Of a stretch of 64,000 nt of DNA, positions 1 through 64,000 are shown piece after piece (within the stretch, counting starts at the first letter, position 1; each line of letters opens with the position of its first letter). A program made the position numbers and the translations under genes. Origin of the DNA: Dicyema japonicum (lineage: Eukaryota > Animalia > Dicyemida); assembly GCA_011109175.1 (NCBI GenBank), contig RDEW01000002.1, forward strand, positions 74,299 through 138,298, read 5' to 3'. The notes under the pieces were generated by a model. The model saw only the letters and a program-made list of their open reading frames with translations, was not told where the DNA came from and made no database searches.

Positions 1-3000
1 CTTATAGTTTAGGAAAAGTGAAGAAGGGAACTCCTATCACTACTATACACGAACAGTTCAAGTCTGCCAAATTGAACTCCTCATATGATTACTATAACCA
101 CGTCCGTTACGTGGATGCTGCAAAGGATATGGGGTTGATTAGTGCGTCATCTCTAATGACGGATATTAGCATGGATCCTGTTCACGTGCTAAATATTTTT
201 AAACTCGTGTCCTCAAAGGTGGGTTTATGCTTATTTCAGGATTTTTCTGTGCTCTCTTCCAATTCTATTTCCCGCCCTGAGAGCTTGCTCTATAGAACGC
301 TTCCGGTTCCACCTATGTGCATTCGACCATCTGTAAATTCAGTACAGGGAGACAGGTATGAGAATTGTGCACGTGTTTAGTCGTGAAGATGATATAACCG
401 TCAAGCTATTGCATATTTTGGCATTAAATGAGCATTTTAAACTGGCAAATTGTACTTTTAACGAACATATGGTTGGCTTGTTTGATAACTTGATAGAAAC
501 GTTACGCCGCCATGTTGTATGAGTGTCTTTTGATGATCAACGATCAACGGAAATTTATCTGGTCTTCCTAGACAATTCAAGGTTAGGTATGGTTTTTTAT
601 TCTAGCCTGACAAAGCGGTGCGATCATACTTTTCTAGGCTGAAGGGAAAGCATGCGAGATTTAGGGGGAATTTGTCTGGAAAGCGGGTGAATTTCACTGG
701 GAGGACAGTAATATCTCCTGATCCATATTTGGGGATTGATCAGGTTATACCATTCATTATTCATAGGTCTCCATACCTTTGCATATGGCTATGATATTAA
801 CCTACCCTGTATTCGTCACAGAGAACAGAGAAGAACATTCAGCAACTGAGAGAGCTGGTTAAAAGAGGTCCTAAAAACTACCCAGGTGCTTCCATGATTC
901 TTAGAAATAAGTCACGCTCAATGTACTTGTTATATTGATTTTTAAAGAAATTTGAACTTTGGAGACTGCAATCAAAGGGCTAGGGAACTTAAAGTAGGTG
1001 ATAGAGTATGTCGCCATTTGACGGAAGGGGACATTGTGCTATTTAACAGACAACCATCTCTTCATAGAGAAAGCATTCAGGCATTCTATGTTCGACCTTA
1101 TCTAATGAATCTAATTAGGTTAACATTGGGACGACGAGGACACTCAGGTTCAATGAGTGCTGTTGTACTCCCTTTAATGCTGACTTTGATGGAGACGAAA
1201 TGAACATCCATGTGCCTCAGACTGAACAGGCAAGGATAGAGTCCATCGTTCTTATGGCTGTTAGTTTTTTACATCACCTTTTTAGTCTACAAAGAACATG
1301 ATCTCCCACAAATGTGGAGAACCACTCACGGCAGGAATACAGGACTTTATTAGTGGTAGGAAGTTCACTTATTTAAAGGAATGCATCTCCTTACAAGGAA
1401 GGATGTGTTTCTGACAGAAGTTCAAATGCTTAGGCTTATCTACTCCATGAAATACAACTATGAGTCTCAACTGTTTAATCGTCCTCTTCCCGAGCCAGCT
1501 ATAATTAAAGTATTTTAAAATTGGCTATTTAGCCTGCACTTTTGTGGACTGGCAAGCAGATTGTCTCCTATTTACTAAAATTCCCTCCCATCGCCGGAGA
1601 AGGCGAAAGAATGTCGCTGAATCTTCAAGGAAAGGGGAAAACTTACTCGAAAAGTGGGGAGGAATTCTGTTTTAATGATTCATGTAACCACATTTCTAAT
1701 ATCAGACTTTTATATTGACGATGGTGACATAATAGCTGGTTCTTTTGACAAAAACTCTTTGGGGTCGGGCTCAAAGTCTAATATCTTCTATTTCATTTCC
1801 CGTAATTTTGGACCCAAGACAACGGTGGATTATATCAGTCGAGTTTGCAGACTGGCAATTAACTATCTAAGTTTGTTTTATTGCATTAATCTTAGTGATG
1901 AACGTGGGGTTCACAGTAACCATGTCGGATGTGATACTCACTACGAAAGGGGAGGTAATCAAGAAGGAGTTGTTCGACACTCAGTTATTTTACGATGTTA
2001 TTTTAAGCAATGAAAGATGCAAGGAATATATTAAGCAGTTTGAAGACGGTAGCTTACATGTCCCTCCTGGATTTTCTCCTAAAGATTCGTTGGAGTCACA
2101 TCTTCTACAAGAGTTGTCTGCAATCAGGGACGAGGCTGGGAAAAAATGCCTCGACGGGGAGACTACTAGGCTGCAGAGTGTCAAGATTATGACTTGCACG
2201 GGGGCTAAAGGTAATTCTAGGCTGAAATTGTAGGTTCCATTAACAATCACTGTCAGATGGCTGCAGTGGTGGGACAACAGGCTATAATGGGTCATAGAGC
2301 GCCAGTCTCGTACAATTACAGATCACATGTAACGTTTCTTAAGCATGGTTGGAATTTGGCGTAAATGTAGACATTTCGCCAATGCCACGTGGTTTTATAA
2401 ATAACAGCTTCTCAACTGGACTTAATGAATCTGAATTTTGTTTTCATATGATGGCTGGTAGAGAAGGTTTGGTGGATGCGGCTATAAAAACGGCTGAGAC
2501 TGGCTATATGCAGAGACGGATTATTAAGGGGACTGAGGATATCCACGTGGCCTATGATAACACGGTGAGGTCCTGTGATGGACATATAATTCAATTTGTC
2601 TACGGTTCCGATGGGTTCTCTCCAGCCCACATGGAGGGAAATTCTCGACCAATCGATTTTAATGGACTGATTATTCATATTCTTGTGGGAAATGTCTTAA
2701 TATCATAGAATTCTTGCCCTGATGACTGGACTAATGCTCTGAGTGCAGATGAGTTTGGAGAGATGATCGATGAGTGGGATCGATCGTTCACTACAGTCAA
2801 TGAGGGGATCAAAGACGAGTTAAGGTTTGTCCTCAAATTCATTTTAGGGAGTTCGTTAAGGGTCTGATGCACCAACAGGTCCACGATGCTGAACTGTTTG
2901 GAAAATATGTGCCATTTTCTGGTTTGAGATGATGTTTTATTAAGCTTTTCCTAAAATTAGGAGAATTACTGGCAAACAACTGAAATGTTTTTTCGACTGT

Positions 3001-4325
3001 TGCTCAAAAAAGTTTGATCGGGCTCAAATTGAGCCGGGAACTGCCATTGGTGCGATCACGGCGCAGAGTATTGGAGAACCTGCAACCCAGATGACCCTGA
3101 AGGCCTTTCATTTCACTGGATTAGCCTCAATGAGTGAGATTTTTGCTTAAATCGACAGCGATCACACAGGGAGTGCCCAGAATAAAAGAAATCATCAACG
3201 GAATGAAGAATATTAAGACCCCCATCCTTCAGGTTGGGTTAGAGGACAACACAAACTTGGAACTGGTGAAGAGAATCAAGGCCATGGCAGAGTCAACTAG
3301 ATTGGGACAAATCTCAGAGATTTATAATGAATTCTACACAGGTGGGCACCGACTAGTCATAATTGTGGATGATACTATTGACAATAATCCTACTGTAAGA
3401 TATTTTTTATTATCGTAGACTGAGGAGGATATGAACTTGATCATCCGAGTAATCTTGGACTCAAAGGTCTACATTTGCCCAGATGTAGTGGTTCTGTTTA
3501 TTTCTAGCAAATTATACTGCGTGGGCGTGAAATTTACATATCCTTGCTGGAGAGCACGATGCTTGACGCTCCACTCACAATAAAAGAACTCCAGCAACTT
3601 GTCATTAAGGGGGTCCCTAACATCAAACAAGCGGTGATCATTTCTCGTGATAATAACGGAGTGACTACTTACGGTCTGGCTGTGAACGGAAACTCATTTG
3701 CTGAGATGATTGCCATACCAGGGGTGGACGGACTTTCTACAAAGTCTAATCACGTGCACGAGATTTTTAAGCATTTGGGAATAGAGGCTGCAAGGTTTGG
3801 TTTACTAAATTAGCAGATCTCTTATTATTGAGCAAATCGAGGAATCTATGTCCTCTCACGCAATTTCTCTTGATAGGCGACACATGATGTTCATTGCAGA
3901 CGTGATGACTAGAACTGTACATGTGTTGTTTCTATTGTAGGGTGAGGTTAGGGGGATGACTATTCACGGAGTGTCAGGCTCTAAGGAAGGGACTCTGACT
4001 TTGGCATCGGTTTGGTTGTAGATTGATATTTTAGTTCGAACGAGCTACTGACTTTTTGTATGATTCTGCCTTTAATGGCAAATTGGATGAGATTAAGCGT
4101 GACATTATAGTTCTATTTTAGTGGTGAGTGAGTCGATTATGACTGGGCAACAACTTAATGTGGGGACTGGGGTGCTTGATTTAGTCACAAAGTTTAATGT
4201 TGGGTTATTTCTTTAGATCTCATTTGGCTAGACCAATTTTCGGGAGAGTTATGTATTTTATTTGGTTATTTTGTAGATCTTCTGAGCCTCCTTCTTTGAA
4301 TTTACCTCAACCAATGTCAATATGA
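1..4325 (+). CDS. POLR3A: DNA-directed RNA polymerase III largest subunit (RPC1), multi-exon, 5' part outside the window
   Basis: Spliced translation gives [62 protein letters not shown] (catalytic NADFDGD), [11 protein letters not shown] (Pol III-type), [21 protein letters not shown] and [13 protein letters not shown]. There is no CTD heptad tail. About 20 GT-AG introns of 21-29 nt. Two 7-nt tandem duplications (535-548, 818-831) break the frame. Confidence 0.95.
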
Positions 4326-4773
4326 ATTTTTTTTAACTTTTTATTTTTTTGTAATATTTTTTGGTACCACTCGAATTGAGTTTATTTTATTGAGCTTTTT
4401 TTGTCGAAGGTTGAGGTGGTGACGTTTCTCGAGTACACGAGTTACTACTTCTTTTAATGATGTAGGAGACACTTGTATTTTTCTTCCGTGAGAAACGACG
4501 TTTTGGTGAACGTTATCCAGACTTTTTTATTGAAGTGATTTTGTTCTGTTGATTTGACTGTGTTTGATATTTCGAAAACAGATTTTAGGTGATATCTATT
4601 TGAGATGCCTCGCTGAACTATTTCAGATGTGACCGACGTCATTTTTTTTCGATTTCACCAAAATATAATAAATTATTAATATTTAATTTTGTCTATCTTA
4701 TCAACTATCTGATACCGCCGATGATAAATTTATAAAATTAATTAAATCGGCCAAATTATTCAAAGTCAGCTGA

Positions 4774-62659: not shown

Positions 62660-63010
62660 AAAGGTTGGAGGGAAAAAGGCTATCGACACATTTTAAAAAT
62701 GTAAATGCTATTATAAAATTAAATGTCAAGCCAGAGTACACACCAAGGGAGACATCATTTTTAAAAGTCAATGAGCACAATCATGCTGGTGGATCTTCTT
62801 ATGTTAAATCTATGAGAATTACTCATGAGATAAAAAAGAGCTCTTGAATCACAAGAAAATCCGCATCTTATTACAACTGAAGTGTGTGTAGGTTTGCCAC
62901 TGGAGGTTTCTGCCCGACTACCGGCAACTTCTTTTATTAAAAGGAACATTAGAATCTGAAACTATTTAGAAGCTCAAGCTCCTCCCAATCCACTTAACAG
63001 ACCAATCAAG
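62660..63010 (+). mobile_element. Mutator-like (MULE) transposase N-terminal remnant with FLYWCH finger (truncated versions at about 54390-54549 and 58590-58750)
   Basis: KCQARVHT...HNHAG..HEIKKRALESQENPHLI...ARLPATSFIKRNIR...PPNP is the typical FLYWCH plus post-FLYWCH helix of MULE transposases. Confidence 0.7.
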
Positions 63011-64000
63011 AATACTCTTAGCATAGACTAGTTTGACCTTTAGTTTAATCGATAATACACAATTTTCTATCACTTTAACCAATACACACACCCACGAGGT
63101 GCATAACCTTGATTAGAACTTAACACTTGTGGAGAATTGAATTTTTCGATTTTTTTATCTTTGGGATTCGCACACGTGACTCATATCGTCGAATTAAACT
63201 CCAAAATCAAATTTTAACTACCAAAGGAAAATAAGCTCATGACCTTCATTCACAAACATGCAATAAACTCCACATCGTTTTCATCTGGAAACTAGGATAT
63301 TAAAATTATGACTTTCTGGGAAGCCACAAAAAGCATATGCTCGCAAAAGTGGGCAAGTCCTGGAATGTAATGTGGTTCGTAGAATGATCCTATAATTAAT
63401 GATAAGGTTACCAATGCCCACGGAACTTACTTCCATGGAAGAGAATGTTTACACACGTGTGAGTATTCAACAGTTGGAGGAGACATGGGAAATGATAATT
63501 GAGGCTTATCATGATAAAAGGACTAAGCTTTTGCGGGATTTGAGTGAACGGGAGAAGGATATTTAACTTATTATTATTGTAGACTCGCGGCTGAGATTTT
63601 CAACGATTTGTGTGATTAAATTGACACGTGGTTGGAGGAGAGTTCAAAGTGTGCAAAACTAATTTCGGAAATGGAGGATATTGATGAGCAGTTGTTGGCT
63701 GTGAGGGATTTTGTTAGCAAAGTAAACGGATTTGAGGACAAAATTGTGGAATCCGAGAATTCGCCGGAGTATGGGTTGTGTCACTTTCAGTGTACGAGTG
63801 AAAATGATAGGGGATATGACATCCAGAGGATGAGGATAGACTTTAATGGACTGAGGAATAGGATGGAGAAGCTGTACTGTCAAGTGGAGAACAATGTCAA
63901 GGCTAATGAGAAAAAAGAAGCAGTGACTGAGGAACAACGGAGTTAGTTTAATTTTCTTTGATTTGTGATTCTGTTGGTTTGTATCATATTTGTTTAATAT

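Follow-up and report, generated by a model that had tools for sequence, protein, structure and literature searches.

A hyper-abundant palindromic hexamer, CACGTG, in gene DNA of the dicyemid Dicyema japonicum

The closest described counterpart of the sequence feature treated here is HIP1, the highly iterated palindrome of cyanobacteria (GCGATCGC). The feature itself is the hexamer CACGTG, whose excess we analysed in a 64,000-base stretch of the genome of the dicyemid Dicyema japonicum (GenBank assembly GCA_011109175.1, contig RDEW01000002.1, positions 74,299 to 138,298; the whole stretch is called the window below). Both words are palindromes that are independent of reading frame, lie within as well as between genes at about one per gene or more, and owe their abundance to something other than base composition. 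HIP1, however, is an octamer, 15- to 300-fold over-represented, with the orphan methylases DmtA and DmtC and a 10- to 90-kb periodicity (PMC5861425, PMC13756078). It has also been linked to natural transformation (PMC5861425, PMC13756078); for the dicyemid word, a role in DNA uptake is implausible. The latter is a hexamer in roughly 10-fold excess, associated with genes, in an animal genome with spliceosomal introns of 22 to 23 nt. An initial annotation of the window, made from its letters, had proposed a HIP1-like system; the likeness in phenomenology stands (hyper-abundant, palindromic, frame-independent), but this is not HIP1 itself, the word being different and the host an animal.

As a word, CACGTG is identical to the core of the class B E-box read by basic helix-loop-helix leucine zipper (bHLH-Zip) proteins (Myc/Max, Mlx, USF and TFE; Cbf1 and Pho4 in yeast, where it is the core of centromere DNA element I, CDEI), and it shares with them a symmetric site of the dimer type. 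Known E-boxes are sparse and sit in promoters and enhancers, in contrast to the dicyemid sites, which use every frame, reach a density of about 1.5 per kb of exon and alter protein sequence. An ordinary bHLH regulon, with a few promoter or enhancer sites per gene, was rejected as an explanation since 38 of the 58 sites in the window lie in predicted exons. To our knowledge no genome is saturated with E-boxes.

Other DNA-level words offer partial parallels. In Caenorhabditis elegans, germline genes are rich in periodic An/Tn clusters (PATCs), which transgenes and transposons lack and whose presumed role is to license expression in the face of silencing; the clusters differ in being 10-bp-periodic A/T runs in introns, not an exact palindrome and not in codons. 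Bacterial uptake sequences (USS and DUS), Chi sites and the FtsK-orienting polar sequences (KOPS) are short words raised in number by the machinery that reads them, in part through drive rather than through a benefit at each site, but they are non-palindromic, biased in strand or orientation, and dependent on transformation, RecBCD or FtsK. Very-short-patch repair by Vsr/Dcm in Escherichia coli inflates one palindromic word and predicts that its deamination product is depleted; for the dicyemid word these products, CATGTG and CACATG, stand at expectation (25 versus 26-27). Full-text searches of the literature found no report of a CACGTG excess in dicyemids or in any animal, in agreement with the initial annotation, which knew of no such animal system, and the word is not mentioned in two dicyemid genome papers or in a paper on short introns. 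A genome-saturating palindromic word in an animal, with an E-box as the word, is thus new to the literature searched.

An exact and symmetric word in excess

CACGTG occurs 58 times in the window (GC 37.6%) by exact count, spanning 183 to 63630, and 50 non-redundant sites are left once 8 paralogous copies in a tandem array are collapsed. From composition alone 7.7 sites are expected, and Markov models of order 1, 2, 3 and 4 predict 6.1, 8.7, 14.2 and 36.6, the last of these being conditioned on the pentamers CACGT and ACGTG, so that the signal is already inside the model. The Poisson probability of 58 sites is 3e-18 under order 3 and 7e-4 under order 4. Among all 4096 hexamers CACGTG ranks first under the order-1 and order-3 models alike, and the runners-up under order 1 (CCACGT, ACGTGG and ACGTGT) merely overlap it. 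The excess is real. The initial annotation had counted the same 58 sites at the same positions by hand, had arrived at the same 50 after collapsing the array, and had expected about 7 at an estimated GC of ~36%; its estimate of about four GTGCAC, two of them overlapping CACGTG, also agrees with the four now found, with overlaps at 367 and 3754. A check that it had set beforehand, on whether the excess would vanish under a tetranucleotide-aware or codon-aware model, shows that it survives both (58 versus 14.2, and 22 versus 5.5 in the long reading frames described below). Spacing is clumped, with over-dispersed counts (variance/mean 1.5-1.7), and no regular or quasi-periodic spacing was found in the 64-kb window, which is too short for periods of 10-90 kb.

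The excess stops at the exact word. With both strands pooled, the 18 one-letter variants of CACGTG total 154 occurrences against 149 expected, none being raised more than 1.6-fold or lowered below 0.69, so an earlier impression that one-off variants (NACGTG, CACGTN) are common did not hold. Away from full sites, half-sites occur as often as expected (96 CACG versus ~104 expected in all), the ACGT core likewise stands at expectation (197 versus 174-219), and the remaining NACGTN palindromes are at or under composition, as is GTGCAC with its four occurrences. Set against its average neighbour, the hexamer is therefore about 8- to 9-fold commoner than expected. At equilibrium this would correspond to a bias of about ln 8-9, or ~2.1-2.2, toward the exact word, which could act through the probability of fixation or through a lower rate of loss.

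The flanks of the sites carry a further preference, and it is mirror-symmetric: the left side does not differ from the complement of the right at the first three positions (P = 0.8, 0.55 and 0.47). C at -1 or G at +1 is favoured (34 versus 19-20 expected) and T at -1 or A at +1 is disfavoured (20 versus 31-35 expected), with a chi-square P of 9e-4 over the 50 non-redundant sites. The preferred extended form of the site is CCACGTGG, a Myc/Max-like flank preference. Symmetric flanks around a palindrome are the trace expected of a dimeric reader of duplex DNA; the pressure on this word is hexamer-exact, symmetric and exerted on duplex DNA.

Several simpler sources of such a word were considered and set aside. 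The flanks are unique everywhere except in the tandem array, and the lack of a common flanking sequence rules out a dispersed repeat or the terminus of a miniature inverted-repeat transposable element. A bias toward alternating pyrimidine-purine sequence prone to form Z-DNA was rejected because other YRYRYR hexamers are at most 1.9-fold enriched, and an effect of the ACGT core or of CpG because ACGT is at expectation, other NACGTN palindromes are not raised and CpG stands at an observed/expected ratio (o/e) of 0.87. A Vsr-like bias in deamination repair is unsupported, CATGTG and CACATG together numbering 25 against 25.7-26.9 expected.

Nor is the excess a general property of eukaryotic DNA of similar GC. 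In three unrelated eukaryotes, the loci of RPC1, the gene for the largest subunit of RNA polymerase III that also opens our window (20 kb each, GC 36-42%), contain 7, 2 and 2 sites against 3.4, 2.3 and 2.3 expected, and CACGTG ranks between 267 and 1990 among hexamers there. The same excess in unrelated genomes of similar GC, which the initial annotation had named as grounds for dropping the idea, was therefore not seen in these loci.

The sites are also present in independent reads. They were found in contigs of four runs from two samples: all 16 sites of a compared stretch are unchanged in contigs of three DNA runs, and an RNA-like contig from a different sample includes sites 8060 and 8238. 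The comparison also yielded 39 allelic differences in 5.95 kb between the assembly and contigs of the same sample. About 20 of these lie within the 0.9 kb of a CACGTG-free spacer (4400-5300), where contig depths are halved, as with two haplotypes. At 4871 and at 7481, contigs from the DNA runs and from the RNA-like run alike depart from the reference and continue into other sequence, which could reflect structural variants, paralogues or assembly joins; neither breakpoint is at a CACGTG site.

Coding sequence under the word

Exonic CACGTG uses all three reading frames (0, 1 and 2), as the initial annotation had stated with two examples, Pro-Arg-Gly at 2386 and Thr-Thr-Cys at 6033, both of which are correct. 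Its further claim that protein sequence does not drive the excess was borne out by shuffling. The long host open reading frames (ORFs) of the window, taken as stop-free stretches of at least 100 codons and totalling 15.3 kb, contain 22 sites, compared with 5.5 +/- 2.0 when synonymous codons are shuffled within each ORF (maximum 11 in 500 shuffles) and 2.1 when codon order is shuffled.

The word can be encoded only where the protein permits it, namely at His-Val, at [Ser/Pro/Thr/Ala]-Arg-[Val/Ala/Asp/Glu/Gly] and at x-Thr-[Cys/Trp]. In the long host ORFs, CACGTG fills 22 of 48 such permissive codon positions where codon usage predicts 3.2, and in spliced gene models it fills 34 of 61. Transposon ORFs fill none of 18 (Fisher P = 2e-4 against 22/48 in the host).

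The permissive peptides are themselves too common. His-Val occurs 18 times in predicted host coding sequence, 2.2-fold above the 8.2 +/- 2.6 of amino-acid shuffles (0 of 1000 reach 18), and the three classes of peptide add up to 57 where 36 are expected; transposon ORFs show no excess of permissive peptides. From this surplus, an amino-acid change seems to have been needed at some two thirds of the set's 30 coding sites. Two sites in RPC1 illustrate the point, anecdotally, since the protein is only 55-59% identical to its orthologues anyway. Site 2386 encodes Pro-Arg-Gly where orthologues have Ala/Ser-Lys-Gly, with Lys in 29 of 31, and the His encoded at site 2544 occurs in 0 of 45. Protein sequence in this animal is bent by a word that is read at the level of DNA.

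Genes, tandem array and transposons

The window falls into the following features, coordinates being those of the window:

3-4216, plus strand: RPC1 gene with tiny introns (Pfam Rpb1 domains 1, 3 and 5; homologues named RPC1); sites 183, 370, 2386, 2544 and 3751
5173-7646, plus strand: predicted 13-exon gene without family match (our own model, no Pfam match)
7670-9957, plus strand: WD40-repeat gene (Pfam WD40/beta-propeller); exonic sites 8060 and 8238
10643-15047, minus strand: predicted 22-exon gene without family match, no homologues found; sites 12057, 12219, 12673 and 14277
15.5-24.65 kb: transposon block
15530-16100, plus strand: decayed piece of a member of the retroelement family (82% identity to 23752-24320)
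21154-24603, plus strand: intact reverse-transcriptase retroelement (RVT_1; 3.4 kb), zero CACGTG
24719-26602, plus strand: predicted 14-exon gene; sites 26138 and 26370, with a further site, 24696, upstream
27369-28237, plus strand: remnant of a DDE_1 (pogo/Tigger-type) transposase (Pfam E = 7.5e-27), zero sites
31567-39348, plus strand: calponin-homology/spectrin-repeat gene of ~35 exons (Pfam CH, Spectrin); 10 sites
39500-52200: gene-poor stretch; 4 sites (40827, 42145, 46758 and 49533), o/e 2.8
52274-52665, minus strand: fragment of an Eapp (E2F-associated phosphoprotein) gene (Pfam Eapp_C)
53150-57345 (A), 57346-61423 (B) and 61424 to the window end (C): tandem array of three ~4.1-kb copies; 13 sites

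When the sites are assigned to classes of DNA, the excess proves to be concentrated in gene units:

Predicted host genes: 39 sites in 26.2 kb, 3.67 expected, o/e 10.6
Tandem array: 13 sites in 11.1 kb, 1.16 expected, o/e 11.2
Other non-genic, non-transposon DNA: 5 sites in 16.5 kb, 1.62 expected, o/e 3.1 (P = 0.025)
Transposon blocks: 1 site in 10.2 kb, 1.26 expected, o/e 0.8

The gene models behind this division are our own tiny-intron predictions, with a median intron of 24 nt, and the class boundaries are approximate. Under a second definition of the transposon block, 10.7 sites would be expected at the host rate and none is found (P = 2e-5). Of the 5 non-genic sites, 2 adjoin genes (24696, which precedes a predicted start codon by 23 nt, and 39463, ~115 nt past a predicted gene end). 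The initial annotation had described the word as spread across host DNA; an excess in resident DNA is indeed what we see, but it is uneven and follows gene units (o/e 10.6, 3.1 and 0.8). This pattern is the opposite of that expected of the target of a restriction-modification system, which would be avoided in resident DNA; here genes carry the surplus and the mobile element shows background levels.

Of the sites that fall in genes, 38 are exonic, one lies in a predicted 22-nt intron and one in a predicted 43-nt intron. The occurrence of sites in introns, also part of the initial annotation, is upheld by site 38137, which lies wholly inside the 22-nt intron 38124-38145 of the calponin-homology/spectrin gene, and by two sites that straddle predicted 5' splice sites as CAC/GTG (6209 and 6374). 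The gene models give no preferred position of sites relative to introns. Introns as short as 22-23 nt are known among animals only from myxozoans and D. japonicum (PMC13644364). In the WD40 gene, introns 7952-7973 (22 nt) and 8111-8133 (23 nt), both GT..AG on the plus strand, are skipped in the RNA-like run of the second sample.

Density per gene varies from 0 to 4.5 sites per kb. The densest stretch is the 13-exon gene at 5173-7646 (11 sites, 4.45 per kb), and the Eapp fragment holds three sites (52331, 52344 and 52501), two of them 13 nt apart. In the calponin-homology/spectrin gene 7 of the 10 sites are crowded into the last 2 kb, which reflects either strong variation of density within one gene or a 3' part that is a separate gene. 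Protein searches for orthologues in other dicyemids or in orthonectids returned, with the RPC1 exon, distant eukaryotes only, at no more than 59% identity and without the query protein itself among them, and, with a 372-aa lineage-specific ORF, no match. The ORFs of the gene-poor stretch are without family match. That stretch also contains a 49-nt tandem repeat of 2.2 copies (42671-42777), and a 152-nt dispersed repeat, possibly SINE-like (of the short interspersed element type), is present in two copies that are 88% identical (30012-30163 and 46450-46601).

Four sites of the tandem array are common to all three copies, and site 63173 occurs only in copy C. Between copies A and B there are 79 one-base and 19 two-base indels over 4.2 kb, and the unit has no family match; either the assembly of the array is poor or its copies are decaying pseudogenes, yet CACGTG keeps a gene-level density in them.

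The intact retroelement is flanked by a target-site duplication of ~29 bp in AT-rich DNA (21126-21153 and 24604-24632). Since it inserted there, a retroelement that targets CACGTG was rejected as a source of the pattern. The direct duplication of ~29 bp is unusually long, and the ~320-aa N-terminal region of the element is without recognisable domain. The decayed fragment at 15530-16100 bears the sole transposon-borne CACGTG, site 15735, where the intact copy reads TATGTG, a word two letters off. Compared with the intact copy the fragment is AT-shifted, 45 differences being AT-ward and 25 opposite, so that the two T-to-C differences that make site 15735 run against the prevailing direction.

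Proposed selection for reader sites, and its rivals

The gradient from genes through non-genic DNA to transposons favours selection over drive as the cause of the excess. We infer that in resident gene units the CACGTG duplex is favoured site by site. A symmetric, probably dimeric reader would recognise the exact hexamer and mildly prefer the form CCACGTGG, and the most plausible candidate for it is a bHLH or bHLH-Zip protein kept by the animal. D. japonicum is reported to keep 14 genes with an HLH domain, which make up the second largest of its listed families of transcription factors (Table S5, PMC6736024); domain searches found no HLH domain in the proteins of the 64-kb window, the retroelement among them. 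Each site born by mutation would be slightly likelier to be fixed or kept than any neighbouring word, with a bias of about 2 in units of 4Ne·s, as estimated from the ~8- to 9-fold shift between the hexamer and its one-off variants. The bias would then represent weak selection for a high density of reader sites in gene bodies, where they may serve as a "resident gene" mark in chromatin or expression. Such a mark would explain saturated genes, protein sequence that yields, and a recent retroelement and gene-poor DNA that are poor in the word. We put this explanation forward tentatively, as one that is plausible and still open to considerable doubt.

A number of observations weigh against it or lend it no support. 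If the word were a licence for expression, transposons should be rewarded for mimicking it, yet the intact retroelement has none. The site-densest gene (5173-7646) is almost without depth in the RNA-like run, whereas the site-poor WD40 gene is well covered, a comparison of two genes in a tiny run. A dead retroelement fragment with a site fits age-linked accumulation in non-functional DNA, which favours drive, and this single case, 15735, is consistent with a gain of the word in old dead DNA, its polarity being unproven. None of the 39 allelic differences lies in a site or creates one, but with only 0.6 expected within sites they are too few to be informative. Paralogous sites of the array are kept in 12 of 12 cases across 4.5-14.5% divergence, which is not significant (P of about 0.11; the divergence is clustered). 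Finally, of two read-supported introns against which the gene models were checked, one was predicted exactly and the other approximately, in frame.

The chief alternative is non-adaptive drive, in which a protein that binds or modifies CACGTG specifically biases mismatch repair or gene conversion, or shields bound sites from mutation so that the word becomes a mutational sink. Copies of the word would then build up with residence time at all places that the protein can reach, for instance in the open germline chromatin of genes, whatever the cost to protein. Much of the evidence suits this account: the same equilibrium shift of about e^2 fits coding and non-coding gene DNA, amino-acid sequence is overridden as biased gene conversion is known to do, transposon mimicry is absent, the word is missing from young transposons but occurs in a decayed copy, made there by two changes against AT-ward drift, and neighbouring words stay at expectation, which a sink and a weak bias would each predict. 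On the other side, the least-constrained DNA, neither genic nor transposon, reaches an o/e of only 3.1 with 2 of its 5 sites adjoining genes, and the signature of deamination repair is absent, CATGTG and CACATG being at expectation. We know of no animal precedent for a hexamer-specific repair bias, and the conservation of HIP1 has been argued to reflect selection rather than biased repair (PMC5861425). Drive is somewhat unlikely in our judgement, and a serious contender nonetheless. Dicyemids are reported to undergo chromatin elimination and selective DNA amplification in somatic cells (cited in PMC6543705), and CACGTG might tag DNA to be kept or over-replicated in this remodelling, a dimeric reader marking gene DNA while untagged, transposon-rich DNA is discarded or under-replicated. 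The association with genes and the scarcity in transposon DNA agree with a tag, which would also account for the lack of mimicry, transposons gaining nothing from it. If true, an animal nucleus would possess a self/non-self system coded in sequence, with a tag powerful enough to rewrite codons. We consider it improbable, given that transposon DNA is present in the assembly, that no junctions or loose ends in the contig data coincide with sites, and that word depth in the CACGTG-free spacer (3.8-5.3 kb) of a deep whole-animal DNA run is 504-619 compared with 540-575 in flanking gene contigs, which is a weak test.

Confinement of the excess to transcription units and their immediate flanks would equally suit a motif read in RNA, CACGUG in host transcripts, as an aid to the definition of 22- to 26-nt introns and their exons or as a self-tag of transcripts; splice signals are minimal in D. 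japonicum (PMC13644364), and two sites lie on predicted 5' splice sites. Palindromes, however, make up only 64 of the 4096 hexamers, which makes a palindromic RNA motif unlikely a priori, the mirror-symmetric flanks suit a reader of duplex rather than single-stranded nucleic acid, and sites show no preferred position relative to introns in the models; we regard an RNA-level cause as slightly more improbable still than a somatic tag. Everyday explanations would be codon or dipeptide preference, the surrounding ACGT or CpG, a repeat family, the E-boxes of ordinary promoters, or faulty assembly, and all that speaks for them is that CACGTG is a common regulatory word. Codon-aware and Markov models, unique flanks, the exonic position of 38 of 58 sites and their presence in four runs from two samples refute them, leaving them the least credible of all.

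The saturation of a genome with one exact palindrome has been a puzzle in cyanobacteria for decades. In D. japonicum, the word is found in about half of the codon contexts compatible with it and doubles His-Val, which means that a DNA-level signal shapes a metazoan proteome. It also biases analyses of codon usage and of motifs, gene prediction, and the classification of transposon and host sequence in this genome, the assembly of which comprises 67.5 Mb at a GC of 36.7% (PMC6736024). The contrast between genes and transposons makes selection versus drive, the identity of the reader and a tie to chromatin elimination testable in one small genome.

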